From Lytechinus pictus (Eukaryota), in NCBI RefSeq assembly GCF_037042905.1, contig NW_026974141.1, positions 8,804,001 to 8,868,000 of the forward strand: a stretch of DNA of 64,000 nucleotides, read 5' to 3'. A program made the position numbers and the translations under genes. Within the stretch, counting starts at the first letter, position 1. The number at the start of each line of letters is the position of its first letter. Below are positions 32,701 to 62,300 of this stretch, piece by piece. The notes under the pieces were generated by a model. That model was not told the origin of the DNA. It ran no database searches and saw only the letters and a list, made by a program, of their open reading frames with translations.

Positions 32701-35700
32701 GCTTTAGCTTGGCAAGTTTTTTACAACGCACAAACATTGCAAGGAACCAACTCTTGCCAGATACCCATTTACCTCATCTGGGTTGAGTGCATCACGATGT
32801 GGATTATTATCTGTTTCTATTTTTGCTATACTAGGAACGAGATCTGTGAAGGCACTGACATCATCATGTGTCCGCTGTGTGATAAGAGATGTCCGTACTG
32901 GACGTTATCGGACAGTTGTTTCTACTCTAAGGTGAGTGAGAGATTGTTGTTCCATTGCCCATATTCTGAAGGTTGTGGTGTAACTATGGATAGCCAATTG
33001 TTTTTAATCTCAAACGAGAAAGATATAAATTGACAGCACATTCGATTCAGTGCTCTCTTCCTTCATAACTGTTTGTGAATGATGAATGAAATAGTTCTCT
33101 TCACCAAAAAAGCTTTGAAAGAGAACACTGAAGTTATTGGAAGCATACGATTTTAATAAGATTTTGTACATTTCGGATTTCCATGTTTTTAGCTCAGAGT
33201 TAGACCATGGCCAAGTTAAACCTGACTTCAGCATTTGGGCCCATATATACATTATCATCTGCATCCGTGAGTCTCGAAATATGATGATTAAGCGCTAGGT
33301 AATGCATTTCCTAGAGTGGTTGTACAGTACAGTCCCATAGAGTGGCAATCTCTAGAGCAATTTGTACAGATGAAGGAAAGTTGGTGCTGAGACAGATGTG
33401 CTGCCCTTCCCTTCCTCTTAGCTCTTCAGTTTGCTAGTTAAACACGCTGATCATTTCAACCTCTACCCTAAAAGAGACTTTTGTCACAATTGGCTGTCCA
33501 TACAATGTAGTTGAACCAAAGTCTAGACCAGAGTTTCAATTAAACCCAAGTTCTGAATACAAGCCTACATGTATGAATGCTACTGTGCTGTTATTATTAT
33601 CAATTGTGGAATCATTAGAATTTCATACATTTTTTCCGTCAAATCTCTCTTCACAGCTGACGTACCTGTTTGATAATGAAGCGACGGTCTTCTTTGCTTG
33701 TTTCATGTCCCTCTGGGGTGAGTATATTGAACTCATAGAGACACACAGCTTTCATAAGGTTTCAAACTTAATCTGCTTTTGATCCACAAATTGGCAACAA
33801 TTGTTGATTTTCATTACATTTTCATACTTTGAAAAATAGAATGTTGATATGACTTGATCAAAAGCTTAAAAAAAACCCATTTTATTAGTGATTTTGTTTC
33901 CATTACATTGCCAATTTGCATGTTATTAGTGATTTTGTTGTTTCCATTGCATTGCCAATTTAGAGTGTGTAATATGATAAAATTAATCTGTTTTTGGTCC
34001 TCAAATTGGCAGCAGTTGTTAGGTTTGTATTCATTATATCCATTGTCATACCTTAAAAATAGAATATGGATCTGACATGAGTGGATGAATAGAAGAAAAT
34101 GGTGCCGATTTATATTTTATTAGTTTAATATCTTATTATTTCCATTACTCTGCCAATTTAGAGTGTTAAATGATTTGCTTGATAATTGTGTCAAACAAAA
34201 TTCATGATGAACTCTACAATGCAAGTGTAAATGTGAGTTAGCGAACATCTTGAATTTTGATATAGAAATCAATTTTGTTATAAAGCTGTTTGATTGATCA
34301 GGAATTTAATATTTTTCTTTTCTTGTTTGTTAACTTATTTTTTTGTTTTTGCAGCCACCATGTTCTGTGAATTCTGGAAAAGAAGACAGAACACGATTGA
34401 CTATGACTGGGACTTGTTTGGCTTTGAAGAACAGGAGGTATGCTATAATCAGAACCAGCGGGTGTTACATAAAATAGATATACTTGATATTTACAATTGA
34501 TCATAACCTTTTGTACATGGTTTACTATAGACTTCAATTTATGTTTGATTGATGAATTTATTATATCTTGTATGTCATAGGAAGCTAGTTTTTAAAGTCA
34601 AAGTGATGAAAGTTCATAATATTAATCAGTGGCGGACCGTGACCCGGAGGAGACAAAGCATTGGAGGGGCACAGCATTGTTCACAAACAATACAGTGCCC
34701 TTCCAATCATTTGTCTCTCCGGGTCACGGTCCGCCACTGATATTAATAATAATAATAATAGTCAGTTCCTGTATAGCGCATAACACATTATGAATAACGT
34801 CTCTATGCGCTTCCAAAGGACTTGGATATTATTACCCCGGCTGTAGTTCAAGCAGCCTTTCCAGCGCTCGGCATTTCAAGGAATAAATTCCTGCCAGGTA
34901 CCCATTCACCTCACCTGCGTTGAGTGGAGCACAATGTGGATAAATTTCTTGCTGAAGGAAACTATGCCATGGCTGGGATTTGAACCCAGGACCCTCTGTT
35001 TCAAAGTCCAGAGACTAATCCACTGGGCCACAATGCTCCACAATTTGTTTCTTTTCTTATTTAAGTTTTTATTGAAAGTTAGTTTCTATCTTACCAGTGG
35101 CGTATTAAAAAAAAAAACGTGTGGAACAGAACATCGTGTATCAGAAAAATTTACTGGATTGTCGCAAATAAAGTTACCCTTTGAAAGTTGTGGTGGAATA
35201 GAACATAATCAACTAATTTTTATGTAAAATTACTATTACATGTAGGGCTTACAGTTGATTTTGGAACGTATGCTTGATTTGGCAATGAGTGCAAGTTTCT
35301 TGCAATGCCCCATAAGATGTTTGCCATTAAATCAATGCCAGAATTTCTTTTAATTTTCATAATAATTTGAAACCAAAAAAATATGCTACAAGAATATTTT
35401 CCCTCTTTTTAGGAGAACATTCGTCCTGAGTTTGAGGCCAAGGCACCAGACCGAAGAGTCAGTCCCATCACCAACGTAAGTTATTCAAATCATGTTTTCC
35501 TCCTATTTTCTTAACAGTTTGATCTCGCAGTAATATGTTAACAAACAATGTGAAAAATAGAATACTTCAGATGTCCACTTTCTCAACAGACACCTGTTCC
35601 AAAAAGAGTCTTAAAAATTATTGTCCCAAACAAATTACTTTATATTCATGATATATGAAATTATATAAAGAAGTACAATTCATTTTGGCATGAATAAGTT

Positions 35701-38700
35701 ATGACCAAACTTTTATTTTTGGAGAATAAAAAAAAATAATGATTTACTTCACTTAAATGAATAAAAAGATATTAATGAAAATTGAAGATTCCTTTCATAA
35801 TTTATATTGGAAGTAAATTCTGCAAAACAGATATTGATAGTGCCATATTTAGGGAAGTAATTTTGAATATGCAACCTTTGATGTGAATTTGATTATTCAT
35901 ATTACTCTGCCAGATGTTTGAGTTTATATCAATTATTTATGACAATGCATGGGCTCTGTTCCATTGAAGTTGTTATCAATGACATTTTAAAATACACTGC
36001 TTTAAGATAAAAAAAATCCTTGTCCATGATTTCCTGAGAGCAAGGTTGTCATCGAACATCTAATTACTGTTATGGAAACATGTTTTGTGGAACAGGGTTC
36101 ATTCAAACAGTGGTTTTTCTTTGTAGTGCTTGTTTCCAGATCATTTTGATGTTCTTTCACTTTATATTTCTGAGATTTTTTCCATTTATAATAAACATCT
36201 AGTGTGTTCATTGATGCCTCCTGTTTGATAATGCTGTAAAGCCTTCCTCACACTGACTGATTGATTGTTGCAACTGGATATTCATATAAATCGCAAAAAG
36301 ATGGGATATGGAGTTTCAAATTTTTAGGTGTATCTGACCGTGTTCCAAAATTATCTTCCAAACTTAAATTTTTCAATTTTTAGCTTTTAAGTCATAGGAG
36401 GGGCCAAACTGAATCCCAGTTGACCAGGGCCCTGTCTTACAAAGACTTATGATTGATCCAATCAATCTCAAGTATATGGAAATCCATCAATGGCATAATT
36501 TTTTCTGTAGGAAATTTGCTCAATGTCCTTTGAAAACAAAGAGAAGCATACTGAATTGTCAAGGAAAGCAGTAAACGTATGAACATACATCATTTCTACA
36601 AAATATTCTTGAACAAACATATCTATTAGATGTTGATGTTGCTGGCTTTCCATAGTTGTGGTTGATTGGGTCAGTGGCAACTCTTTGTAAGAAGGGCCCC
36701 AGCTGTGATTGGTGTGACCTCACTGTGACTTTGTCCCATTTTGCCATTGTCTAGAAATAAATGGGCCACCTGCAATCTTGGTATTCCTTTTCATTCAGGA
36801 TATCAATTCAAAAGAAAAGAATTTTCCTTGTAATTATTGTAGGCAACATCCTGATTTCTTTAAAAATAAGAAATCCAGTCGCAACCAATCACACAGTCTG
36901 AGGCAGGTTTGATATTGCCTCTGCTATTGATGCCATGCACGTTTTCCCCCCCAAAAGAAATATAATGCAACAATCATCATCTTGATCGTCTTCTTTTATA
37001 CTGACCAGTTCTTCTCCACTCCCTGTATGCAGAGGTGCCAAAAAACCCTTGTTTGGAAGCCGAAGAGATGGGAACCAGAAACAACTTTGAAATTATGGAT
37101 CTCCTGTCCTGTCATCTTGTTCTTTTGTGTGTCTCTCCATGTTTGCTGTTAAAAGTTTGTTCTCTTTTTCAGATTGTAAGAGGTTGGACAAAGGAACTTC
37201 TACTCACGGTCCCGTTTCATAAAGACTTGTTATAATAACAAATGTTCGAATTCTGTAACAAATCTACTATCAGCCAATCAGATTGAAGGATTTCAGTGTC
37301 TTACACGTATATCTGTGATTGTGTTATTATAACAAGTTTTATGAAACTGACCCCATGAATGAGTCTAAGTATGGAATACCAATTGCCAATTAATGATTGC
37401 TGATTGAACAAGTTCATTTCCAAGCCAACTCATTTTCATTTGCTTCTTGTGCACTATTGTACAATCGGTCACCATTAAATATCCCCTTTTCCACCCGAAT
37501 CTTGTAGAATCACGAGTCGTACATCAAACCGAGAAAGAGGTTCCCCCGTGTCTGGGCCTCGGTGCTGTCTGTCGTTTTCCTGGTGAGGAGATTTCAGAAA
37601 GGACCGTGAAAATGTCTCCACTTTGTAACATTTCTTGATGTGAACTAATATTATTTGCTTGATGCTTCTCAGGTTGATGCATTGTCGTCACTGGCTCGTG
37701 GATCGTGACCACACACCTTTCAAGTATTCTTAAAACCTGGGGAGCATTTCATGAAACAGTGAATTTCACTCACTACGTTATAAGCTACCAAAATCCTTGC
37801 ATCTGATTGGCTCAGAGCAAATGTGTATTTGAAAAACACTATTTCTTCCATGAAACAGTTCCCAGGCTTGCTATTTCAGTTTTCTTTTTTAATGTAAATT
37901 ATTGTCCAAATTAAAATGCATTCCGGTAGAGCGGGAGTCTTTGGATTTTCCACATTTGAATATAGACCCAAGCCAAGCAGCCATCCATTCCGACAGGAAC
38001 AACTATGCAATGTTTCATAAAGACTTGCTATTGTAGCTTGTCCAATGGTACGACTTGAATGAGTAGACCTTCCATAAGTTGAATATTCACTAAATTTTAT
38101 ACGATTTTGCAAAAAAAATTGTCATGTACCTTTTCTATTAAATCAAATTTCTCATGAGTCAAACAGGTTTCTGTTGTCCCAAAAGATTCAAAGGCAAATT
38201 TACCTGTTAAATGAAATGCCTAATTTTTATTGGCTGCTGAATCATAATGGCAAAGTTTTGAAGATCTCTATGAAACTAGGCCCAATTGAGACATTTTTGG
38301 GTCATATTATGAATGGGTAAAAAATAATATCTTTATCATAAATTGCTTGATTTTTTTTTTGGTGTTGGATAAGAAGAATGGATTCTCATCTAGGCATGAA
38401 TAATCAACATTTCTTTGTTTGCAGGCATCCTGACTGAAATGCACATTATTGGTGTTGATGATTTAAAACATATGCATTTTATATCAGGTTCACTTGAAAG
38501 CAAATATCTACCTGGTGATTGGATTATCTCCGAATATATGTTGGCAGGATCATGAATATTCATTATGTCTATATCACATTATGTCCTGTGGTTAAATTGT
38601 TTTCTTGTTACATTGCATATGTCCAATGTACATTTCAATGTGTGTTTTTGGATACATGAATATTCATTGATTCGTTTGAGAATATTCATGATGTATCCCA

Positions 38701-41700
38701 CCGCTGCCACCAAAATGTGAACAGCCATACATGATGCTCATGAATATTCAATTTATTTGTGATATTCATCTTGTATCCCACCGCTGCCACCAAATGGTGG
38801 ACAACCAAACACGATACTCATGAATATTCATAGATTGTGATTTGTTATTTGTTATGTGCATTCATGGTTCATGCTCACGTTTTCTTGATCATGTCACCTT
38901 TGTTTCTTAACATACGCTGTTTGACCGCATGACGTGTGAATTGATTTATGGCGCCCTCAGCTCACCGAGCCTTACATGAAGTTCTCGAAAAAGTTCCCAA
39001 GATTCTCGGCATCGGTTGCATCCATTTTCTTCATGGTGAGACTTGACAAGAATTCAACAAGAATTCAACATGAAAAACAATAACAAAGAAACCCCCGAAA
39101 TGCCAAATGTAGTTGCTATCCCAATGCGATGATTGTATCATTGCATTACTAGATGGCATCATGTTCATATCATACATAACTTTTGTGCATGTATTTCTCC
39201 ATTGTTGTGCATCTGATAATTCTGTGTAGCTCCCAGAGCCGTACATGAAGTTCTACCGTCGCTTCCCACGCTTTATGACGTCCATCACTACAATTGCGTT
39301 TATGGTGAGAGATTACGAACCGGTGCTTCCCGACAGCACACGGCAAATCCTTCTACCTTACAAACCCTGTTTTATGTTCAGTTGTGTCGCCTGGAACCCT
39401 CAAAGTGTATCTTCTACTCAACTAACCTTTGCAAATGCTTGCATATTTCACCTTCATCTACTTTTATTCGAGTGACTCTGACACTACTTTGTTTGCATCT
39501 TATCTGATTGCTATAATCTAACATTGGATTGGGTTTTGACTTCAAGTGTATATATCACGTAACTTTCTATCTTGCAATCTCTTGTATGTACACGCATTTA
39601 ACACTTGCAAACAATAGATGGCTGACAGCATCTTTTCCAACTATTCTTGTCAATTTCTTCCCCTTTATTTACCTTTTTGTTTCTTCACTCACTTATAATT
39701 TTCTTTTTGACCTATCATGCATGTTTATTTATCCTGATTCTGCTATTTTTCCACTATTCTTTCCTCGTCCACAGTGAATTTGATGAATCAGTTTGATTTT
39801 GTTCAGTCCTCTATGTAAATTGGTCTGTTTTGGGATCAGTCACTTGGTGTCTTTTGCACTAATTTTTAATTTGATCTTTTTTATTCTTTCTCCCTTCTTT
39901 CCAAAATTCACTCACTATGTGACATTACACTCTGTCTCGTGTGGTTCTGTCAAAATCGTATTTGATCATTTATGTCTGATCATACTCCTTAACAATATTG
40001 ATAATTGTTAATCGGGGCCGGGACAAATGTAATTCTATATATATTTCATTCCCCCCTTGAACATTGCTAAACTGATACAAATAAAAATATCTTCTAACTG
40101 CATTTCTTGCTAATATTGAAATAAAATCTGTTGGTACGTCCTCCAATTATTAATTTTATGCCATTAAAAAAATAATTTATGTACATGTGTATATTGGAAA
40201 CTTATATGCAAATTCATAAAATTCAAAATCATTAAAAATCATTCTTACTAAAACGAAAATTGGGATTCATGTTATTACAATATTCACTCCGCATACACAT
40301 GCAAATATCCAAATTAAATAACTGCGTATAAACTGTATTTGGTAAATGAAATTGTACTCGATTAATTAAAATTGTATTATAAAACTCAAAATTGTGTTTT
40401 ATTTAATATCAAATTGGGATTTGTGTCATTCATTCATTCATTCATTCATCATGCATTGCGACTTCCATTAACACCCTCAATCTCAAATGTGTGTGATCCA
40501 TGCCATTGATAATGCACCTCACAAAAACCACCCATGCATGTGGCAACTAAAACTTTGGATTCTGGATGACCTTTGGCCCATGGATGACCCCACGGCGTGA
40601 CCTCTATTAACCCTTGTGCGACCTGGTCAACTAACCTTACACCCTGGTGCACGTGCATGATGATGGCTTCCCCATGAGTTCTGGTAACACCCACACAATT
40701 TTCTCTCTTTTTCTTTACACATCTGCTGGGTTTTTTCTTGGATAACAAACATGACCCCTTGGTGACCTCTAATCTGACCTCATCCTGACCCCTGACACTG
40801 TATGTAATTACGGTGTCCCTTAATCCTGCTAACATCCACACAATCTTTTCTTGTTAATTACATATCTGCTGGGTTTTTCCTGGATAAAAAACATAACCCC
40901 TCTCTTAACCTTCCATCTGACCTCTGTTTTGACCCTTGACCCCTGTAGAGAGAGGAGCCATTTGTTCCCCTGAGAGTGCGATTTCCCCGCATCATAGGGG
41001 GTCTAGCGATTATCCTATTCATGGTAGGGTGAAATAATTATGTTACTTAAAGCCATACAAGATACTAACTGCCCTTTCACACGGTAAAAAATCGTAATTT
41101 GAATGATGATTCCAGTGAAAAATGAGGTTAATGGCGAATTTTTAGCACGTGTGAAACCAAACTAGAATGGCGAACGTTAATCACAACCACGAATTCAAAT
41201 TCTATTCCAGATGTGAATTCCAGTTAAGTTTCACTCAAATTACGGTATGAAGTTTCCGTGTGAAAGGTCTGATGATTCGAAAGATGAATTGCAATCATCA
41301 TTACAATGATGATTCAAGATTCACGTGTGAAAAGGCCCCTAGAGACTGCCACACAGAAATTCTATTAGCGCTAACACAGCACGAACAGTATTAAGCTCAG
41401 TCACTTTTTTCGGATTGTAATTTCAAATGTTGATCAAAGATGTAAACAACGCATTGTTACATCAGCATTGCTATGACATTATTGTAACAGGGCTTCTATT
41501 AAAGCATTGTTAGCACTACCAACGTTTCTGTGTGGCCTCCACAGTTATATACACTGTACAGTGTGTCCCAGAAAAAAGGAAACCTGGATTCCCACATCTT
41601 TTTCTTCAAAGGCAAATTAATCCTGATATTTCATTCACATCATCATACAATTCAATTATTCCTCTACATTTTGATACCTAATTAATTGACAAACACTTCA

Positions 41701-44700: not shown

Positions 44701-47285
44701 AACCTTCTTTTATCTAGAATTAGTTCTTCCCATGAATAAGAAGACCGTTTTCTAGCACTATGAGGTTGCCACCAGTGCTGCCATATGGCTATTTCTGAGC
44801 TGCCTCATTAAAAATAAAAATTCTAGATAGTTTTAACAGCCCATTGACAGTATACTGACATATCAATAATTCATGGATATTGATTTTTTACCCCTATACT
44901 ACCTATACCTATGTAAACTACTCAAAACTGTTTTGATAACTTTCAGTAATATGAATATATTGTTCATTACCAGCCACCCTGAAACCAATATGTCACCCAA
45001 AATGAAGTTTAAAATTTTTATTTAAAGTGATTGGTTAACATTGGTTTGACTTTGAAAAAATCTGAGCTAGAAGGTCACACTTGTCACCTGTGTCTGTGAT
45101 ATGTTACAAAAATGAAGCCCAGAAAAAAATTGCGTTTGAAAATAATTATTTAGTGCTTCAAAAATTGAAATATAAAGTGACTGAAAACACCATCTTAATT
45201 TCATCCCATACACTTATGTGTACTATTTAGGCGTCTATAAGACGCCTATTTACAAAATCGGGGTTTGCCTTGTAGTTTAAGCTTTTCATTCTCTATAATG
45301 GTTGTTTTCAGAGTTTATTAGTTCTAATACATGCACTTGTACACATGTTTCATCTTGGTTTGAGAATTATTTAAATCGGCTGCTCACAAAGTTAAACAAT
45401 ACCTTTAACATGCAAAATCACATCCTAAAATGATATATAACTTTTCAAAATTGATCAACAATAACCCTCACAGGTACTCAATTGTAAGCAGAATAAATTC
45501 TGCAGAAGCTTGAAAAATAAAGGATAAAACAAGGGTTGAAGTTTGGGGTTCACTTGAACATGAGATATGCGCAGAGTGCAATCTCAATGAAGCTTTCAAG
45601 CAATCTGCTAAAAATGGTTACTGAAGAAACTTGTATCTTTGATTTTGATTCACCTTTACCACTGCAAATTTGGCAGTGTGAAGAAGAATTACTCTTTCAG
45701 ATAATTAATTTTCATATTTTTGCTCTTTGAAGACCCAATTACTATTTTGACTATTTACAAATAACATTCCCTGACAACTTACTGTTGGCTTTGGGGTGAC
45801 TGGTCATATTTGATTTGCTTCTATCATTTATAATCAATTATTATATTTTCATGTACTGTGTCACTTTATATTCTTATACAAATTCTATGATAAAGCAATG
45901 TTTATTTAATTTTATTTGTTCTTATTACGTTTAAAAAAATGCATGAAAAGTGACCCTATTTGGCATGGACAACACTTTTATTGATTTATCAGCAATTTAT
46001 TTTTTTCAAATTTTAAATTATGCACTGCCTAACGAATGAGGAAATTATGCACATTTGCAAAGCATTCTTTGCATTACTTTCCAAATGAAATTTGCAGATA
46101 TTTAAATTTTCACTCTAGTGCATTTTGCAAATCATAATTTTTGGTATCTCATGGAAATATTAAGTATATACATGTATGCTCTAACATTTACATTGAAGAA
46201 ATATGATTCAGAATCATTTAAGTATTCTTTTATTTATTAAATTGTAATTAAATGGATACATGAGAAGTTCAATTTATCAAGAGTAAATCACCTTGAGATT
46301 TATTTTGGTTCAGAATAAACTTATATTAACAGCAGATTATTCTAAAGGTCCCCTTGAAGAGCCTTATCTCTCAGTATTCAGAACTTCCAAATTAACACCA
46401 CATTACACAAAGCCATATAGAGACTGAATATCTGTTATTCAGAGTAAATTTTGAGTTGATACAAATATTTCTAAAAGAAGTATAAAAATTGTCATATTAT
46501 GGGCTTGAACCACTGTTTAAAGATTAAAAAACAAAACCAAAACAACCCCAAACAATGATTGTTTGAAGGGGGATGGGGGTATTTTTTTCTTAGAATACCT
46601 AAGTTGAGGGAAAATCTAACTGATTTCCTTTTGGTCTTGTGACCAATTTTCTCCCTAAATGCCTCTCTAGATTCTGCTCGTCATGGCAGCTGTCATGACC
46701 GTCATCATCTACAGAATCGTCGTCAAGGCAGCCATCTTCTCAATCGACCAGGAATTCATCTCATCTTTCTCCTCCATCATCACCTCGGTAACGGCTTCCT
46801 GCATCTCTCTCATCCTCATCATGATCCTTCAACTGGTGAGTATCATACTTCATGCACAATATATCCTGAAGGGGTGGCATAAACATTATGAAAAGCAATG
46901 GACCAGTGATAGAGCCTTGAGGGATTCCATGGCTCATGATGTTTTCACATGGTGACTGCTGAGCTACAAAACCACCAATAAAGTGTGGTTTTCATTTGCA
47001 TACCTCATGTATCATATAGAGTGTGTCAGTAGGATATCCTGAAGGGAATATATAACCATTGTGAAAAACAGTGGACCAGTGATGGAGCCTTGTGGGACTC
47101 CACACCTAATCATGATTTTTTGACATGGTGAGTTTTTTATTTCTCTGCCAAACCCAAAACCTGTGTTGCTATCACTTGCATACTTGCATACAAGCTCATA
47201 GAGCTTACTCTGTATGATGCTCCACTCATGTATATATATATAACATGAATGATTATACTAATATGAATATTATGTAATGTTGAAA

Positions 47286-47337
<52 letters not shown>

Positions 47338-50300
47338 TAAAATCAAAATCAAATCAAATACTTCATGCATTATATAGAGTGACACTCAATAATTCACATT
47401 GTTAATAATATGGAAATAAAACTAAATATGCCAGCTTTACATGTTGATGAATTTTATATATATGTTTTTTTTTACAGTTGTACGAACGGATTGCTGTGTG
47501 GCTAACCAACCTTGGTAAGTAACATGCAGTACAAGTATAAATCATACTAAGTGTTTATCCTTGTAGTGTACTTACAGATTTAGAAATAAGAGTCAAAGTA
47601 ATGTAGAAAATGCTACTTCTTTTAAAGCCTAAAGCTTCGGTAAAGGATCAGTGAGGTTGTGTCATGCATTGTTTATTGCCTTAGAGTAATGTAGAAATGT
47701 GTTAATTTGTTAAAGGGGCAATTCGGACAGGTCATGGGAATCGATACGTACAGAAACATGAGAGGTTAGCTATTTACAGGTACCAGTCATGAGCAAACCT
47801 GCCTGTTAGAATAATGACAGGTCACATAATAGATCTCAGTCAATTGATTATGATCCTCATCACATTACAATGTATCATTTCTTCTCACAGAATTGCACCG
47901 AACGGAAACCGAGTACGAAGACAGTTTCACCTTCAAGATGTATCTCTTTGCATTCGTCAACTACTACTCTACCAGTTTTTACATTGCGTTCTTCAAGGGA
48001 CGGTAGGTTTCACAATGATGATAATAGGGACGGTACATGTATGTCTCTAAATGATGATAATACAAAATAATACAAATGTTTTAAGGTATCTCTTGTGTGG
48101 TTTAGATGAAACTTTGTTTACGTATAAAATTAATTGGATAAAGATGTTGATTATTTTTTGTGGCATTCCTCTCTTTTCTTTTAAACAGCCTACCCGGTAC
48201 TCCAGCTGACTATGGCCGTGTGTTTGGTATCTGGCGTCAAGAAGAGGTGAGGAAAAACAATGCAAAAATTAAACAATGCAAAAATTTTGTTCAATTTTTA
48301 TTTTTTTATAAAGCGGAGATAGCAATTAAATATTTAAACCTTATAATCATTTAGCTAAATACGCTTGTCGTTGCACGGCTGGCAGAAGGGCTCCAATTTC
48401 TCGCCAAGCAGGAGGGCGCACATACCAAATCCCATCTAACCTATAAAATATCCACTTATTTCAGACCAAATTTACTATGCATGTTTCATTTCATCCCTTT
48501 ATTCAATCATTTAAGTTTGGTTTAAAATAAGTTGATATTTTATAGGTTAGATGGGATTTAGTGTGTTTGCCCTTCTGCCTGCCGCGCGACGATATTACAT
48601 GAAATGTTTATGAATCGATGTTTGCTTGACAAAGTGAAAAAACGTTAAGTAGAAGAAGTGGAAGACGGCCATCTTGGCGTGAGACTCTCAACATTCAGGT
48701 GGAGTATTTGGGTTTATTCCAGTTCGTCTAATGCCAATACATCCAATTGCCAACTCGTCTACTCTCATTTGGTCTACCATCAGTTCGTCCACTATCCACA
48801 TGGTCCAATTGCCAATTTGTCCACTCACCATTTCGTCTAATATTATAACCAGTTGGTCCAGTAGCCATTTAGTCCATATACCATTTGGTCTAATTGGACT
48901 AAGTGTTAATTGTGTAAAATGAATGAAAATGAAATAAATATTAGACCAACTGGTTATGAGACGAAACGGTCATAGACGAAATGGTGATTTATTAGGCTAA
49001 ATGAAATTAGACCATGTGGTGAGTGGACGAGTTGGCAGTAGACGAATTGGCAATTTCCCTCTTGCATGTAGTGATGGTTGGACTAAATCATAACTCCACC
49101 ATATTAATTGTACACCAAGTGGCTTTTAGCTATAATAATGGAAGAGACGATCTGAGAATTAGATCTACCAGAAGACCTAGTGGATGCAAACAGTAATTCT
49201 AGGCTTTCAAATGCTAGAGGTGTTGTGGCTCAGTGGATAAGTCTCCGGACTGTGAACCACAAGGTCCGGGGTTCAAATCTCACCGCAGCACTAGCATCCT
49301 TTGGCAAGGCATTTATCTACATTTGCCACTCTCGACCCAGGTGTAGTAAATGGGTACCCGGTAGGAAGGAATTCTTTTTGAATGCTCGATGCGCCCGATC
49401 AGGGTAGCCGTGCTAAAGCCGGGGTAAAATTATGCGGCGCTTAGAAACATTTGTATTAAGTGCTATATAAATGTTGCATATTATTATTATTAGAAGCCAT
49501 AAATCGTGACAGATACTGTAAAAATTTATTAATTTTTTGTCTCTCTTCTTCTTCGTAGTGTGATCCAGCTGGATGCATGCAGGAACTATTCATCAACATT
49601 GCCATCACTATGTGTGGAAAGCAGTTCTTCAATAACTTCATGGAATTGGCTTTGCCGTAAGTAGTTTTGAGGAGACATTCTACCTGACTTGCGGTTGATT
49701 TTAATGAAAGCGTACGACAATTGAACATTTTGTTGCTTTGGTGAAAATAACAGCACATGTTGTTATGAATTAAAAAAATTACCCTCCTAGGCAAGTATTC
49801 TGAAGTCAGGTTTAACTTGGACCATGGTCTATCTCTGTGCTAAAATTATGGGGAGCCAAAAATTAAGAAATTCTGTCTATATTATATATTTCTTATACAT
49901 GTATTTACTATTTTTGTTTCCTTTTGCTTTTATAATGAAGGAAAACACTTCAGTTATCATTCCCAGACAATTATGGACAATTTCGGTGTCATACGAGTTA
50001 ATTAATTGAATGTGTACTGTTAGGGATTTGTGCCCCAATTGGCTCTCCATAGTTAAACCACAACTTTAGACCAGGGTTTAATTTCAACCCAAGTTCAGAA
50101 TATGGGCCAAAGTGAAAAAATTAGATAGGGGTGAACTGATAGTTTGCCGGAACGGCAACTGTAGCAGTACATGTATACTGAATTGTTCCCCTATGCAGTT
50201 ATAGATTGTGATATTATCTGTGGACATACATGTACAGTACATGTACATGTGTATGATATGAACATACTAGAAACTTTTTCTTTCCCTCTGCAAAGTGTCG

Positions 50301-53300
50301 TCTTGAACTTCTGGCGCTCCCGTACTGGTCGCAAGGAAGAAAAGAGCGGCAAGGGACGCTACGAGCAGTGGGAGCAAGATGCTGACTTGGCCGACCTTGG
50401 ACCACGAGGGCTCTTCAAAGAATACCTTGAGATGGGTACGTAAACGGCCTGGGGCCCATTTGATAAAGAGTTACAACCATTGTAACTTTACCATTTTGGC
50501 CACTACCATGGTAGCATGGCTCCGCAGCCAATTACAATGAAGAATTTCACGGTAGTCACAGTAACGACATATTTGAATTATGTGTAAATCCTTGTGAAAT
50601 AGGCCTGTGGGGACTAATTTTTTTTTAATAGTATAACAAGGCCAAAGGTTATGAGAGGTATTCTAAACTTAAATTTAAACTCTGGTCTAAAGATGTGGTT
50701 TATGGATAGTCATAAGTAATAAGCAATTGTGACAGGTTCTCTCTCAGTACAAGTTCCACTTGTCAGCTCATTTGATACTCAAATAATTCATAACTGACTG
50801 GGAATAGTTACTGAAATGATTCCCTATATCACTGAACCATGAGTAAAAAGCCATGTAAATGCATTTTGAAATGTTTGGCTTCCCTTAATATTAATACAGT
50901 TAGACCATGGCCTAAGTTAAATGGGACTTTAGAGTACGGGCCTTTGAGAATAATGTAATGATAGGGTTTGTGTCATCAGACTAGGCCTCATTACTTTTTA
51001 CAATACGAAACATAAGGATTCAGATTGAATTCCACCCATCGAGCAGCTCGGCCGGTGCGGTGCATTGCATAAATCCATGCTCTCCTCGGTTAGGAGTAGT
51101 GGCACAGATTGAGAAGAGACTTAAAATATGATAAAAAGCATAAAGACAGCATTCCCCATCTCCCATAGGTGGTGTTCTTTATCTCATTTATTTGACTATC
51201 TGTTTCTCATTCCTCTTCTCTTCTGATTTTCAGTTGTTCAGTTTGGTTTCTCAACCATCTTCGTGGCTGCTTTCCCCCTTGCCCCTCTCTTCGCTCTTCT
51301 CAACAACCTTATCGAGGTCCGTCTCGATGCCTACAAATTCATCTCTCAGCTTCGACGACCCGTCGCCAAGCGGGCTCAAGATATCGGTAAGAGCAGATCA
51401 TTTGCTAACATGTGAATGGGAATTTAAGATTAATATTCTGTTTAAAAGGGAATTATTTTCATTTTGTACCAGAAAAGTTACCTGTCAATTATTACTAAAT
51501 CCACAATAATCAAAAGTTCGTGAATACAGTACATGGTGTGAATTTGTGATTCACTTTGCGCACTGAACAAGAAATTCTACTTCTTTTTCAGTGATGTGAT
51601 ACTAAACATTGTCCGGTCTACTCATACTCATACCATAGCTAGTGCTAGTCTAGTGGCAATAACTTTCGCACTGTGTGCTCGATGTCCTCTTATATTTTGA
51701 GGCGGTACATGTATCATTGTAAAACTTGCTACTCGTGTCATCCCTCTTGCTCTATACTATTCTTTCCCTCAAGCTACTGGAAGTTACCGGAAACAGCGTA
51801 AGCTACATCCCGGAACTTATGGTTATTGCCGATTGCGAGAATTTGTGCATGACCCTAAACTCTCATGAATTGACCTCTAGTATCGAATCATGATATTTCC
51901 CTTTGTTTATGTAAATTACGTTTCATTTAAACAGCGAAAGGTGAGCTCTTGTACCTAAAGGTTAAAGAGTAGTAGTAGTTGCAGCAAACAATTATTTCAT
52001 GAAAAAGTCTTTCAGGTTAATTGTTCCCATATTGTCATATATCTAGATCTTGTATATTAATGTAATCTTATATTTGTGAAATCATGAAATCTTTGCTCAA
52101 AACCAATAATTCTGATGATCACTAACATAGAAAAGCATATGTGGGACAGTTTATTAATATTGCTCGGTAAATTACCTGATATTTGATCGAATTCCCTGCT
52201 TATTTTGCTCATTTCTCAGCAATTACTAATTTTCTTCCAGACCCACTAGGCACATATTTTTTATTCATACATATAAACACTTGGGTTGTAGATTTATTGG
52301 ATTCTCTTCAAACTCATTTTGAGATCGTTACCGCAACTGGTATTAATCTTTAACTTTTATTTAATCTTTTTTATGTTTTTACTTTTCAGGTGCTTGGTAT
52401 GCAATCCTAGTTTCCATTGGAAACCTGTCTGTCTTGACTAATGTAAGTATATACGTTCAACCAGGGAGCGGAGGGTGTTTAACAGAGATTTAAGTATGGC
52501 TTAGAGTCGCACTTAAATTCCTAGTTGTGTGCGTTAGAAAAGGCATGACCGCATTTGTTAGATCATGCCAAGAGGACGTGCACTACTGCATATTTTTAGC
52601 TCATCCGGCCCTTTGGGCCGGATGAGCTTATCACGTGGCGTCCATCATCTGTCATCCGTCCACAATTTCAGAATGCTTCTTCTTCGTCATTTCAAGTCTG
52701 TTTGCTTTAAATGATAGCTCTAGGTGGGGGATTCAAAACTTATACACAGAATTTTGAAACTAATTAAATATGCTAATTTTTGCGAATTTTTCCAAGTTCA
52801 CAAAAAATGCTTCTTTATTTTTTGACTGATTTTGATTTTTTTGCCTCCATCTGGTAAAGTTTTTTTAAGAGGTTCACCTGACTTCTACCAAGGAGGTTTC
52901 AAATGAGATTGAGTAACAACAAATAAAATCCCTTTGAACAAGGTTAAAAACCGCCTGCAGAAAGTATGTCAGGCATGCACTTTGCTCAACATTTCTTGCA
53001 ATTGTGTAGACAAACAATTCCCGCATGACTCCGCAGCTATAGGTCATATATAAAGGGAAATATGCTATTGTGATGATAATTACTTTTTCGCTGCATCTTC
53101 TACACAGAATTTTGAAATTTCGAGTAGAAAATTATTTATGCTAATTTATGCGAAATCTCAGAAAAAAAACTTTTTCCCCTTCATTTGTTGATCGATTTCA
53201 ATTTTGTTTGCTTGATATGATACTGTAGCTCTAGGTGGGGATACTAAATTTCACAGAATTTAGAAACTCACTAAATATGCTAATTTATGCATATTTCTCA

Positions 53301-56300
53301 AAACTCACAAAAATGCTTCTTATTTGTTTACTGATTTTGATTTTTTTTTGTTCCATCTGAGAGCCTCATGAAGTTCACCAATTTCAATTTTGTTTCCTCA
53401 ATTATGTCACCAATATAATTCACTACAGTGTCAACTGGGCTAAATTAAAAAATTGTGTGAAAATTTGTTGCGAGATGCCGGATAAGCTCCACATCATTGA
53501 TGTGCTGGTTCAATAAGCTTGCGCGTTGCATATCATATTCGCGTCGTCAGTCGAGTGCAACACAAAGTCATACTTAAAACATTGTAAAACACTCCCCTAT
53601 GGTACATGTATGTTTCACAAAGAGCCAAGTTTGAATACTATTGGTCATTTTGCTCCCCTTCAGAGGATTTATCTTGTAATATTGACGGTTTTAAATGTTT
53701 TTTGTTTGTTTACAGGCACTCGTCATTGCTTTTACCTCTGAGTTCATCCCCCGTCAAGTTTATAAATATTACTACAGTGGCGAAGAAAACAGTCTTGTTG
53801 GCTACAACAATTGGTCATTTTGCTCCTCTTCAGAGGATTTATCTTGTAATATTGACGGTTTTAAATGCTTTTTTTTTTTTTTTACAGGCACTCGTCATTG
53901 CTTTTACCTCTGAGTTCATCCCCCGTCAAGTTTATAAATATTACTATGGTGGCAAAGAAAACAGTCTTGTTGGCTACAACAACTGGTCACTTTCCTATTT
54001 CCAGACCAAGGATTTCCAGGAAGATTCGAAGCCTTCTGATCCGTCTTACCCAAGGGTTGAACCAGATGACCCGAACTATGGTCTTAACGTCTCTATGTGC
54101 AGGTAAAAGATGAAGCTGACTCTACAAAAAAGATGAGTTTGGTATAAAGCATTGTCTTGAGAAGAATTTCTAGAAACAGAGTACTGGTAGTCCGTCTGAT
54201 CGATTCTAATGTTGAAAATCGCTTTAAAAAAAAAATTAAAAAAGAAGAAAAATACACTGTTAACCAAACTTATCTTTTAAGGTTTCTTCATTGAAATGAT
54301 GCCATGATATGAAGTAATAATTTTTTTGATAGGTGAAAGTTTGAACAATATCAGACAAACAATAAGAAAGTTATGAATTTTAACAGTTGTAAATATTGGT
54401 AATCATTATACTCATGGAGACTTTAAATTGGGCGCATAGCAGATGTCATAGTGATGTAAGGCAAGGACTCCTCGTCCATTGTACTCCAATACATAAAATG
54501 GCAAAAAAAATTCTTCAAAGGTTTTACTTTAAATAATATTTATCTTTAATGAGGATATAAAACAACATACTTCCATAGTTATATTTAGATAACTGCCCCA
54601 GGGGCCCCCTGATAATTAAGTACACGGGCTATGGGAAAGTTGTCCTTGCCCCTTGTCATAATCTACTCACCCTGTTGCCAATTTGAAATCGACATAGTCT
54701 AAGGGATCTTAAATTTAAAGCAGCGGTAACTTTCTTATTGCTCATCCGATTCCCTTCAGACCTTAACCATTTGGTTTTATTATTTAATTTTTCTCCTTTC
54801 CACACAACATTTTATGACCAAGGCTGGACTCACCTTTCATTCCTCATTTAAAGGGGAATCCAGCTTTGGCCATAAAATGTTGTGTTGGGAAGGAGTAAAA
54901 TAAATCAAACAAAATGGCGAAAGTCTGAAAGAAATCGGACAAGCAATAAGAAAGTTATACATGTAGCTGCTTTAAAATTGAGATCACTAATACTACGTAG
55001 ATTTCAAATTGGCAACTGGGTAAGTAAATTATGACAAAGGGCAAGGACAACTTTCCCATAGGCCATGTACTTTATTATCAGGGATTTGTGGTTTTCTCCC
55101 AAGTACCAATTCCCCTGGGGCAGTAATCTACATTTGTAAATATAACCCAGGTACATGTAGTATATTGTTTTATGTCCTCATGAAAGAAAAATATAATTTG
55201 AAATAAAACTTTTGGGAAAAATGACATTTTAGCCATAATATGTATTGGAGTACATGGTAGTCCTTGCCTTACATCACTAGGACATCCCATATGCGGCCAA
55301 TTTGAAGTCTCCATGGGGATAGTGATTACCAATATTTACAACTTTTAAAGATTCATAACTTTCTTGTTGTTTGTCCAATATTGTTCAAACTTTCACTTAT
55401 CAACTTGTCTGATTTTTCTTTTCCTTATAAAAACAAGTTTTTATTTGGGTTGGATTCCCCTTTAAGTGGAGTCGGTCATTTTCATTTTGATTTGGATTCT
55501 TTCAGATACCGTGGCTACTACGATGAGAATTACGAGGTTACTTTGGACTACTGGCTTATAATCGCGATCAAGCTGGCCTTCATCTTGCTCTATGAGGTAA
55601 GTATTGTACCCAAATATCAAATAGTAGCTTCCCATTTAATGTACCGTCACTGTGATAAAGAGACTGTTCGATTTCTTTTTAGAGAGGGTGATGCTGTGAG
55701 ATAATTTTGTTTTCCTTTTTTGTTTAAATCGCAAATAGAGCCATCAGGCTTGTACAGCACCTCAAAACTTGAAATTGATCTTGCAAGTGAAAGTAATTTC
55801 TCTTAATTCTTTGGTATTATTAGTCATAAGGGTACATAGGGTTTATTGTACAACAGGGCTCCATAACTGAAAGGGATGCTTCAGGCTGAAAATAATATGA
55901 TTTGAATAAATAAAGCAAAATCAGGCAAACAAAAGACTGAAAATTTGATCAAAATCGTACAAGGAATAACAAAGATATGGTATTTTAAAGATATATATAT
56001 GCATTATTCCAGTAAAATAATTCTAGGCATGTCGTCATGCCTACTCAATGAGCAATCTGATGATGTCATATCCCCACTTGTTCTTTTGTATTTTATTATA
56101 TGAAATTAGGTTTATTCAATTTTTTCCTCCGAGAATTGAAAATATTGGAACGACAACTGATTCAGTACATTTGATATTATTGCTGCAACTTATTTCATAA
56201 GAGGAGAGACATAACATTCACACATGTATAAAAAAATCAAACAAATATGATTTCATGTAATAAGATAAGAAAAGGAAAGTGGGGATTTGACATCATCAGC

Positions 56301-59300: not shown

Positions 59301-62300
59301 CGTGCTAAAGCCGGGGTAATAGTATGCAGCATTTAGGAACATTTGTGTTAAGCGCTATATAATTGTTGCATATTGTTATTATTATTTCACAATGCGTTAC
59401 CAAAATATGGTATAAAAAAATTCTGAAATGCAAAAACTGAATATTGATGATGTCACACTTTGGTTCTCCATACTAACCTTCGTTATTGCATGGAATTATT
59501 ATCAACTGTAAGATATTCAAATTCATTAACTATCCAGCTTACTAATTTTCATACCTATCAGATTATTATCATGAAATTTACAGACTTCTAATCCATTTTT
59601 TAATTAAAATGGAAAAAAGGGGAAAAAAATCAAGTTATATATAAAAGAGAAGACATTTCAAACTAGGATGCCATTAGCTGTGTCATGTCCTTTGTATTTA
59701 AAAGAATGAACAAATTTGCTATGATAGTCCAACATTTCTCATCTTATGTAAAAGAAAAGACATTTTGTTGCATTCCATTTTGTTGTATCATGAAATAGAA
59801 ATGTCAGTTGTTCTTTCTAGATCTTTTTTCTTGTTTTCCAATTTATTAAATCTCTTTCTCTTTCAATTAAAAATAAGTCTTTTGTGTGCCTTTCCCATTC
59901 AATGTTTGTTATGTTTCCCCTTTTATTACCTGTGTGCTCGCTCATTAACTTTTTGTGTTTTCTTTTCTCACTTTCATTGTCTCTCTTCCTACATGTATCT
60001 CTCTTTCACTCTGTTTCGACAGCTCTCACATTATTAAACTTTTGTTGTTGTTGATTTCTTTCACTTTTTGATCTACCTTTTTAATGTCTTTTCCCCCTAT
60101 TTCTTTCCCTTTTTAGCCTCCTGCTCCTGTCTTTTCTGTTCTCTTTTCTCAAATTTCTCTTAAAATTTGTCACCATCCCGATATATGTTTGTTCCTGTTA
60201 TCTATCTATCTACCTACCTACCTATCTCTTGCTCTCTCGCTCTACTTTTTTTTTTCTCTTTTACAGCTTGTACACACTCTTTCTTTTACTGTTCATGTGT
60301 ACTATGAACGAATGTTGTCAGTCTATTTCATTATTTATTTTATTCCCACCCCCTCTTCACCTTCTCTCTCTCTCTCTTTCTCTATATCTGCCTATCATTT
60401 CGATTCTGTCCTAGAGATTGTTCCCAGTACTCTCTTTCAGTGCTAAACTATACCTGTAACCTTTCTCTATTTTCCACTCTGTAAACTCCTCCTGAACGTA
60501 ACAGACCTCTTCTTTTGTCTATGTCAGCCTCTTTCATTATCTGTCTTGGTCCTACCTCTCCCTCTCTTTTTCTCTCGCTGTCTCTCTGTTTCCTCTTTGT
60601 ATCTTTACTTGCCTTATCATTTTGGTCCTGTCCTGGAGGACATACCCTCTCTCATTGTACCTATATCCTTTCTATATTTCCACTCTGTAAACTCCTCCCG
60701 AATGTGACACACCTCTTCTTTTCTCAGTCTCTTTCATTATTTGCCTTTCTCCTGCTTCTCCCTCTCTTCTTTCTCTCTCGCTGTCTCTCTGTTTCCTCTT
60801 TGTATCTTTACTTGCCTTATCATTTTGGTCCTGTCCTGGAGGACATACCCTCTCTCATTGTACCTATATCCTTTCTATATTTCCACTCTGTTAACTCCTC
60901 CCGAACGTGACACACCTCTTCTTTTCTCAGTCTCTTTCATTATTTGCCTTTCTTCTGCTTCTCCCTCTCTTCTTTCTCTCTCGCTGTCTCTCTGTTTCCT
61001 CTTTGTATCTATACCTGCCTTATCATTTTGGACCTGTCCTGGAGGACATGCATGTACCCTCTCTCAGTGTACCTATATCCTTTCTCTATTTTCACTCTGT
61101 AAACTCTTCCCGAATGTGACAAACCTCTTTTTTTGTCAGTCCCTTTCATTATATGCCTTGCTCCTGCTTCTCCCTCCCCTTTTGCTCTCTCTGTCTCTCT
61201 ATCTTTCTCTTCTAATCTTTACCTGCCTCTTACTTCGATTCTGTCCAAGAGATTGTACACGCTCTCATTCTGTGTGAATTCGTATAACCATAATATACCC
61301 TCTCTTCACCTTCTGTAGCATCTCGTCTTATTCATCAAGTTCTTTGTGGCCTACATCATTCCCGACATGCCCGATTTCGTCAAGAACCAGATCAAGCGCG
61401 AGAACTACCTAGCCCAGCAGGCCTTGCGCACGGCCTTGGTAGAGAACCGGGGCAAGAGCAAGAAGATGGTCCCGCCCGGCGGACCTGAAGACTCCTCCGG
61501 CGCTTCCGGCCCCGTCGAGCCCTAAACCGGCTTCCCGTCGCCACGACTACGCATCATCCATCAGCGATCTTCACTATCATCGCGTCTGCATCCACTCATT
61601 TCAAACCAGAGCATATCTTTCTAAATCCGACTTGCCTCGTACACGACAGTGGCCTCTGTGGAGCTATTCACTTCCTCATAGAACATATTTCGTACTGTAT
61701 TTTATATATAGCCCCCTCTATAGACCAAAACTGTCAGTAGTGATGGTTGTTCATATTTTTCTGTCATAGCTGTTTTCTGTCATTCTTGTATATATCAATA
61801 CCTGACTTTGTATTGTACCATATTCTGTATCATTTAAAAAAAGTGTTAAAGCTTTTACATATATATCATTTACTTTTATACTTTCCGTACCCTATTTCTT
61901 TGAATGCTGTGTCTCGATTCAGAATTAGAACAAGAATCCATGTTCAGTGTTATTTCTGTTCTCATTCTTCATAAGAAAGTTTGATTCTTGAAATATGCAT
62001 GTGACTTTCCTAACAGGGTTTCACCTTCTAAATCTTGTTATTAACAAGTGTTCTCGAATTGACGTTTCTACATTTAATTGATCAAAACATGTGTTATACT
62101 AGCATTTCATAAGAGGCTTGACTTTTGAATAATGGAAATATTGATATATGTTGTATCATGTAATTATGCTCTATGCACTTAAGAACGAAAGGAGAGAAAA
62201 ATCATCATCAGTTGCTGCTTCACCTATTTTGTCATGTGGTAATGTGTTTGCAATCATCTTTACCCCTATTTACCCCTTATTTCACTCTCACTTGGCATAA

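Follow-up and report, generated by a model that had tools for sequence, protein, structure and literature searches.

Why four exons of exactly the same length stand one behind the other between two constitutive exons of an anoctamin (TMEM16) gene, and how the transcripts of that gene deal with them, is the question raised by a 64,000-nucleotide (nt) stretch of the sea urchin Lytechinus pictus (contig NW_026974141.1, positions 8,804,001 to 8,868,000 of the forward strand; hereafter the window, numbered from its first letter). Very probably, the four exons arose by tandem duplication, all of them code for protein, and they are used in a mutually exclusive way. A preliminary description had proposed four paralogous 75-nt exons of phase 0/0 with AG/GT borders; its coordinates proved exact and all four peptides translate. 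The exons concerned are the following (TM, transmembrane helix).

35413..35475, + strand: upstream constitutive exon, 63 nt, phase 0/0, AG/GT; end of the TM2-TM3 loop
37508..37582, + strand: alternative exon A, 75 nt; the most basic of the four; FL as the last two residues
38961..39035, + strand: alternative exon B, 75 nt
39230..39304, + strand: alternative exon C, 75 nt; prevails in the RNA runs examined
40949..41023, + strand: alternative exon D, 75 nt; acidic start, Gly-Gly in the helix; last in the cluster
46671..46835, + strand: downstream constitutive exon, 165 nt, AG/GT; outer half of TM3, loop and TM4

All four variants lie within the 11.2 kb between the constitutive exons, and each of them is in phase 0/0, directly preceded by AG and directly followed by GT on the + strand. 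Since both flanking exons are in frame 0 and read through on translation, any one of the four yields an uninterrupted reading frame. The residues E3, F12-P13-R14 and F24 are common to the four peptides, and no other place on the + strand of the window has the motif [RK]FP[RK]. The copies match each other in tblastn searches with E values of 6e-8 (B-C), 2e-4 (A-B) and 5e-3 (B-D), and chance open reading frames were therefore rejected as their source. No fifth copy was detected by tblastn in the window. Identity between copies is highest at codon position 2 (56-80%) and near random at position 3 (16-44%), and the introns flanking the four copies are unrelated to one another. Taken together, the codon-position pattern and the unrelated introns mark the exons as old coding duplicates rather than products of chance. 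The cluster shows the arrangement by which mutually exclusive exons are recognized, namely adjacent homologous exons of equal length and phase, each with its own splice sites.

By profile and full-length similarity the gene is an anoctamin, and channel or scramblase activity is predicted for its product. Matches to the Pfam profile PF04547 (Anoctamin) reach up to 80 bits and flank the cluster on either side, all in its orientation.

34318-34518, 47809-48027, 49535-50434 and 51230-51391, + strand: exon-wise matches to the Pfam profile PF04547

The protein cluster of the gene carries PF04547 together with the dimerisation domain PF16178. Compared with mouse structures, the full protein scores 694 bits against TMEM16F and 673 bits against TMEM16A over ~850 residues (about 1e-200), and the Ca2+-site motifs of TM6-8 (N..E, EYLEM, E.R.D) are identical to those of TMEM16F in the alignment. 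The subfamily assignment is ambiguous. RefSeq names the gene 'anoctamin-4-like', the nearest vertebrate proteins in searches with the TM2-TM4 region are ANO5 and ANO7, and the full-length scores are about equal against the ANO6 and ANO1 structures. The idea that the cluster is common to other anoctamin paralogs of the same genome was rejected, as a profile search returned only the window locus and a near-identical copy of it.

What the cluster exchanges can be read from the alignment with TMEM16A. The region aligns to residues 455-522 of the mouse protein by HMMER, with the variant segment at ~476-500, and bears out the likeness to the RFP...SIIFM stretch of TMEM16A that had been recognized beforehand. 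R455 is matched by the Arg of RPEFEA, which the upstream constitutive exon encodes, R486 by the basic residue that precedes F-P in each variant, and M500 by the last position of the variant exon, ten residues ahead of G510. In TMEM16A, R455, R486, K571 and R579 make up the phosphatidylinositol 4,5-bisphosphate (PIP2) site at the cytosolic interface of TM3-5, and G510-A523 is the upper pore part of TM3 (PMC7910439). Alignment and site positions together indicate that the variant exon covers the final part of the loop between TM2 and TM3, a single position in contact with PIP2, and that half of TM3 which lies on the cytosolic side, in line with the earlier placement of a PIP2-contacting Arg and of TM3 in this segment. 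Basic residues number five in A and four each in B, C and D, and D has two acidic residues; the net charges are about +4 (A), +3 (B, C) and +2 (D). The helix portion is rich in Ser/Thr in A-C and contains Gly-Gly in D.

On this basis, each mature mRNA would contain exon 35413-35475, a single member of the set A-D and exon 46671-46835, in this order, so that all isoforms would be equal in length at the cluster and would differ in 25 residues. We infer that exon choice, which may be specific to cell type or stage, could tune the cytosolic TM3-TM5 interface, i.e. its PIP2 dependence, its Ca2+ gating or the opening of the lipid/ion groove. Differing charge and differing helix packing would be the means.

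Mutually exclusive use, as proposed in the preliminary description, is supported by annotated isoforms, cloned cDNAs and RNA reads. The isoforms were taken as the listed members of the protein clusters with the segment cut out. About 150 RefSeq isoforms from 13 ambulacrarian species carry exactly one 25-residue variant each, never zero or two, and the order in all inspected isoforms is RP(E/Q)(F/Y)E, 18 residues, one 25-residue variant and the constitutive I-x-L-V exon. The variants seen per species were these.

L. pictus (sea urchin): B in 5 models, C in 5, D in 2; 12 of ~31 models seen
Strongylocentrotus purpuratus (sea urchin): C-type in 8 models, B-type in 4 (including NP_001073009), D-type in 1; all 12 XP isoforms seen; cDNA AAY82885 C-type
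Diadema (sea urchin): 3 variants
Asterias, Acanthaster and Patiria (starfish): 4 variants each
Amphiura (brittle star): 6 variants
Apostichopus (sea cucumber): 3 variants
Anneissia and Antedon (crinoids): 2 variants each
Ptychodera (acorn worm): 2 variants

Cluster size by group is two in crinoids and Ptychodera, three to four in sea cucumbers, urchins and starfish, and six in the brittle star. The search for conserved copies outside the window was thus positive, with clusters in other echinoderms and two variants in the Ptychodera models. No variation at the segment was seen in the isoform sets of spiders, Priapulus, corals, oysters, the nemertean Lineus, gadid ANO5b or duck ANO7. In L. pictus itself, the exon B peptide is found exactly in isoforms P0157, P0227, P0233, P0234 and P0236, exon C among others in P0235 and P0232, and exon D in P0226 and P0229. 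To these come two cloned S. purpuratus cDNAs. Their proteins, 921 residues each, are 98% identical; one is B-type (NP_001073009) and the other C-type (AAY82885), and of the 17 positions at which they differ, 8 belong to the 25-residue segment.

RNA over 35400-41399 was available as two contig sets (X1, X2) and two raw-read runs (X21, X22), and junctions were read from 15 of 84 joints, those listed; any rarer junctions would lie outside that list. The junction 35475->39230, which leads into exon C with GT..AG borders, is present in all four runs (contig depth ~200; 8 and 10 raw reads) and is the sole junction from the upstream exon among the joints listed. Exon C is covered at a bin depth (79-83) equal to that of the constitutive exon (66-72). 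Exon B reaches a depth of about 7-12, ~1/10 of C, and a contig of run X2 stops exactly at the exon B donor and continues with 27 letters from outside the stretch, which fits splicing of B to the downstream constitutive exon. Exon A appears only in an unspliced contig of depth 3, and the depth over exon D is at intron background. Of the splicing predicted beforehand for A, B, C and D, the step from 35475 to C was thus recovered in four of four runs; junctions from 35475 to A, B or D were not among the joints listed. One variant per transcript is what models, cDNAs and, for C, the RNA junction reveal for B, C and D; A is not included in this statement.

Four intronic stretches (36400-36800, 37200-37400, 37600-38000 and 41000-41400) stood out in the same runs by very high RNA depth, many partly fitting reads, reads on both strands and rearranged joints. 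Most likely they are copies of abundant transcribed repeats outside the mRNA of this gene.

Could the four exons be ordinary cassette exons that are combined or all skipped, with the one-per-mRNA pattern being an artefact of the annotation pipeline? All of them are 75 nt long, so that double inclusion or skipping would stay in frame and escape nonsense-mediated decay (NMD), and the B-C intron of 194 nt is long enough for splicing; moreover, the search for an exclusivity mechanism of the docking/selector kind gave none. Against this, two or zero segments occur in none of the ~150 models, although the 13 species were annotated independently, and in neither cDNA. The joints A->B, B->C and C->D are absent among those listed from the four RNA runs. 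In addition, a doubled or missing half-helix would be expected to break the ten-helix topology. We regard free combination of cassette exons as very improbable and mutually exclusive use as the far better description.

The mechanism of exclusivity is not an obvious one. As 75 is a multiple of three and double inclusion or skipping leaves the frame intact, NMD cannot enforce it; policing by reading frame cannot work in this deuterostome cluster and some other mechanism must exist. The shortest internal intron (B-C, 194 nt) has a likely branch site near its acceptor, and NMD and steric hindrance both appear to be excluded as enforcers. All splice sites of the cluster are GT-AG with U2-type donors. 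Conserved docking/selector pairing was not found in scans of limited sensitivity, which covered complementary 11-mers common to L. pictus and S. purpuratus and duplex folding of constitutive against variant flanks. The only complementary 11-mers common to both urchins were palindromes within the A-B intron. The term 'Dscam-style', used for this cluster beforehand, therefore holds only as an analogy, as its docking/selector part was not found.

The palindromes themselves form an array.

38552..38831, + strand: ATGAATATTCAT palindrome array in the A-B intron, 140-410 nt upstream of B in both urchins

The element ATGAATATTCAT is present in four to five copies in this intron and is exact in S. purpuratus (L004:43415-43653), where the surrounding intron is ~76% identical. 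Eight matches were counted in the window, with one expected. The nested stems predicted for the array fold better than shuffles, with z scores of -3.85 in L. pictus and -3.04 in S. purpuratus, which makes the array a candidate RNA structure, to be taken as a lead only. A second lead comes from (U)GCAUG, the consensus for Rbfox proteins. It is located at -43 of C (39186-39191) and at -34 of B (38926-38931), and at the same distances in S. purpuratus (L004:44016 and 43765); it is absent at those places in Patiria and Anneissia. Rbfox-type regulation of B and C may be considered as a lead only. Apart from these elements, the 400 nt before D (40540-40948) are rich in TGACC(C/T) and AACCCTT units, and the same is seen before D (and A) in S. 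purpuratus. This TGACC-rich tract may be a shared site for a splicing regulator.

The window locus has a near-identical partner. With a profile built from the four peptides, a second set of four exons came to light on the opposite strand, at C21:7337247-7340934, and its peptides are identical. This second copy is collinear with the window, inverted, and lies ~1.5 Mb away on the same chromosome C21, at ~85-98% identity with indels. The part compared was C21:7313363-7366000, in which ~12 kb of the window (about 1.8-13.7 kb) had no match. Between the copies, 3 of 300 exon bases differ, all at third codon positions, and the flanking DNA differs by 4-10%. Either a real segmental duplication or an uncollapsed haplotype may underlie the second copy. 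It bears the RefSeq isoform series X1-X30; the window copy is represented by the single RefSeq model XP_063971237.1 (P0235), which carries exon C. For annotation this means that the isoform diversity of the gene is real and that the locus is present twice on C21, in near-identical copies of opposite orientation.

The S. purpuratus locus (L004) holds four exons in the same order, all with AG/GT borders; the Patiria locus (L005) has four and the Anneissia locus (L006) two, and in all three species the last exon is the acidic, glycine-containing D-type. The ratio of the proportions of nonsynonymous (pN) and synonymous (pS) differences between L. pictus and S. purpuratus is 0.16 for A, 0.18 for B, 0.40 for C and 0.20 for D. 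Values well below 1 imply that all four exons, A included, have been kept as coding sequence, and purifying selection on each of them is indicated by this substitution pattern. The ortholog of exon A in S. purpuratus (L004:42773-42847, AG/GT) has a pN of 0.10 and a pS of 0.67. The earlier suggestion of old duplicates under selection is thus supported, both by the low pN/pS and by the orthologs present in S. purpuratus, Patiria and Anneissia.

The history of the variants was approached with a FastTree phylogeny of the 25-residue segments, whose supports are only indicative because they rest on 25 columns. The D-type exons of urchins, starfish, sea cucumber, crinoids and hemichordates group together (0.88-0.92), and this group also takes in duck ANO7, which had been entered as an outgroup. 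To the eye, the one exon of the coral Porites is D-like, yet its position in the tree is not with the D-type. Exon A of urchins groups (0.85) with a starfish exon; of the 15 listed isoforms of Asterias (A. rubens and A. amurensis), more carry this exon than any other variant. The D type of exon looks ancestral.

Several observations weigh against the reading of four mutually exclusive exons. C alone is clearly spliced in the four RNA runs, and A and D are at intron background. The RefSeq XP models are computational, RNA-guided predictions, and the isoform series sits on the near-identical second copy and leaves the window copy with its one exon C model. No sea-urchin model or cDNA seen carries A (with 12 of ~31 L. 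pictus models seen), and A of S. purpuratus has VPR where FPR is otherwise invariant. The proposed tuning of PIP2/Ca2+ regulation or groove opening is extrapolated from TMEM16A.

An alternative is that only some of the exons are live, with C (and B and D) in use and A a relic or decoy that never enters a productive urchin mRNA. Such a view would account for the lack of an A junction among the listed joints of four RNA runs, which contain A only in the low-depth unspliced contig, and for the absence of A from the S. purpuratus proteins (12 XP isoforms and two derived from cDNAs) and from the 27 Lytechinus and Diadema proteins seen. A search of a set of 5.8 billion proteins with a 71-residue query for fragments with exon A gave no candidates of any kind and carries no weight for or against its use. 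In sequence, A also stands furthest from the other copies, and in S. purpuratus its FPR motif no longer has the F. A relic, however, would hardly have kept its open frame, its AG and its GT in both L. pictus copies and in S. purpuratus. Between the two urchins, 12 of 18 differences in A are synonymous and 4.3 are expected (binomial p 1.4e-4). Nor does the grouping of A with an exon used by starfish isoforms, for what 25 residues can tell, speak for a dead copy. We therefore consider a relic status of exon A unlikely, albeit considerably less so than the cassette model, and retain four functional, mutually exclusive exons as the preferred reading. Exon A might be used in a rare cell type or condition outside the samples.

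Beyond the cluster as such, a broader scenario is offered tentatively, and we hold it to be possible rather than probable. The cluster would be an ambulacrarian invention more than 500 million years old that supplies interchangeable modules of PIP2 site and inner TM3; each cell type would have its own choice among them, and A would serve a rare one. Exclusivity would be achieved without an NMD, steric or U12 basis, possibly via the palindromes or (U)GCAUG.

Known systems help to place the cluster. Exons 8/8a of CaV1.2 and 5N/5A of NaV channels are mutually exclusive pairs that swap part of a transmembrane segment. Like them, the exons described here are tandem paralogs of equal length and phase, with one per mRNA, that replace a helix segment at unchanged protein length and, as we presume for our case, tune gating. 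Unlike these pairs, the cluster resides in a TMEM16 gene, has four members (two to six across Ambulacraria) instead of two and, among the taxa sampled, is confined to echinoderms and hemichordates. Within the TMEM16 family, the alternative segments a-d of TMEM16A (ANO1) are cassette exons, c and d of which are located in the TM2-TM3 loop. They belong to the same intracellular loop region, and their splicing tunes Ca2+/voltage gating. In contrast to the exons of L. pictus, they are included or skipped, change the length of the protein and affect the loop only, whereas here a substitution comprises the R486 equivalent and half of TM3. In having more than two duplicated exons of which one is chosen, in its age and in its lineage expansions, the cluster resembles exons 4, 6 and 9 of Drosophila Dscam1 and the muscle myosin heavy chain clusters of metazoans (PMC1397879, PMC3912159). 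It differs from Dscam exon 6, where docking-site/selector RNA pairing operates, in that no such pairing was found, and the array is far smaller.

Searches of the full-text literature, also for exclusive splicing in sea urchins, found no published description of a mutually exclusive or duplicated exon cluster in a TMEM16 gene, in agreement with the preliminary description, which knew of none. The isoforms are in RefSeq and the two cDNAs have been in GenBank for years, so that the data are public, as far as visible apparently without interpretation. The cluster stands out by its age, its lineage expansion from two to six exons and its position at a site of gating and lipid binding, all this without an obvious mechanism of exclusivity. 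Gating of TMEM16 proteins takes place at the cytosolic TM3-TM5 interface, which holds the PIP2 site in TMEM16A, and of this very segment two to six natural versions have been kept for hundreds of millions of years. They provide a natural isoform series for how the segment sets Ca2+/PIP2 sensitivity and channel or scramblase behaviour. If the broader scenario is true, the cluster would serve as a set of natural chimeras for the dissection of TMEM16 gating and, in deuterostomes, as a model of multi-exon exclusive splicing.

Two further features of the gene deserve mention.

61319-61525 and 63586-63774: paralogous alternative last exons, based on L. pictus RefSeq isoforms; end of TM10 and C-terminus
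53716-53820 versus 53888-54102: 172-nt tandem duplication, which copies the acceptor and the first ~35 codons of an exon

Both last exons are used in L. pictus RefSeq isoforms and are combined with any of B, C and D. The upstream copy of the 172-nt duplication is out of frame with the real exon and is included in no isoform seen; it is possibly a decoy acceptor or a pseudo-exon.

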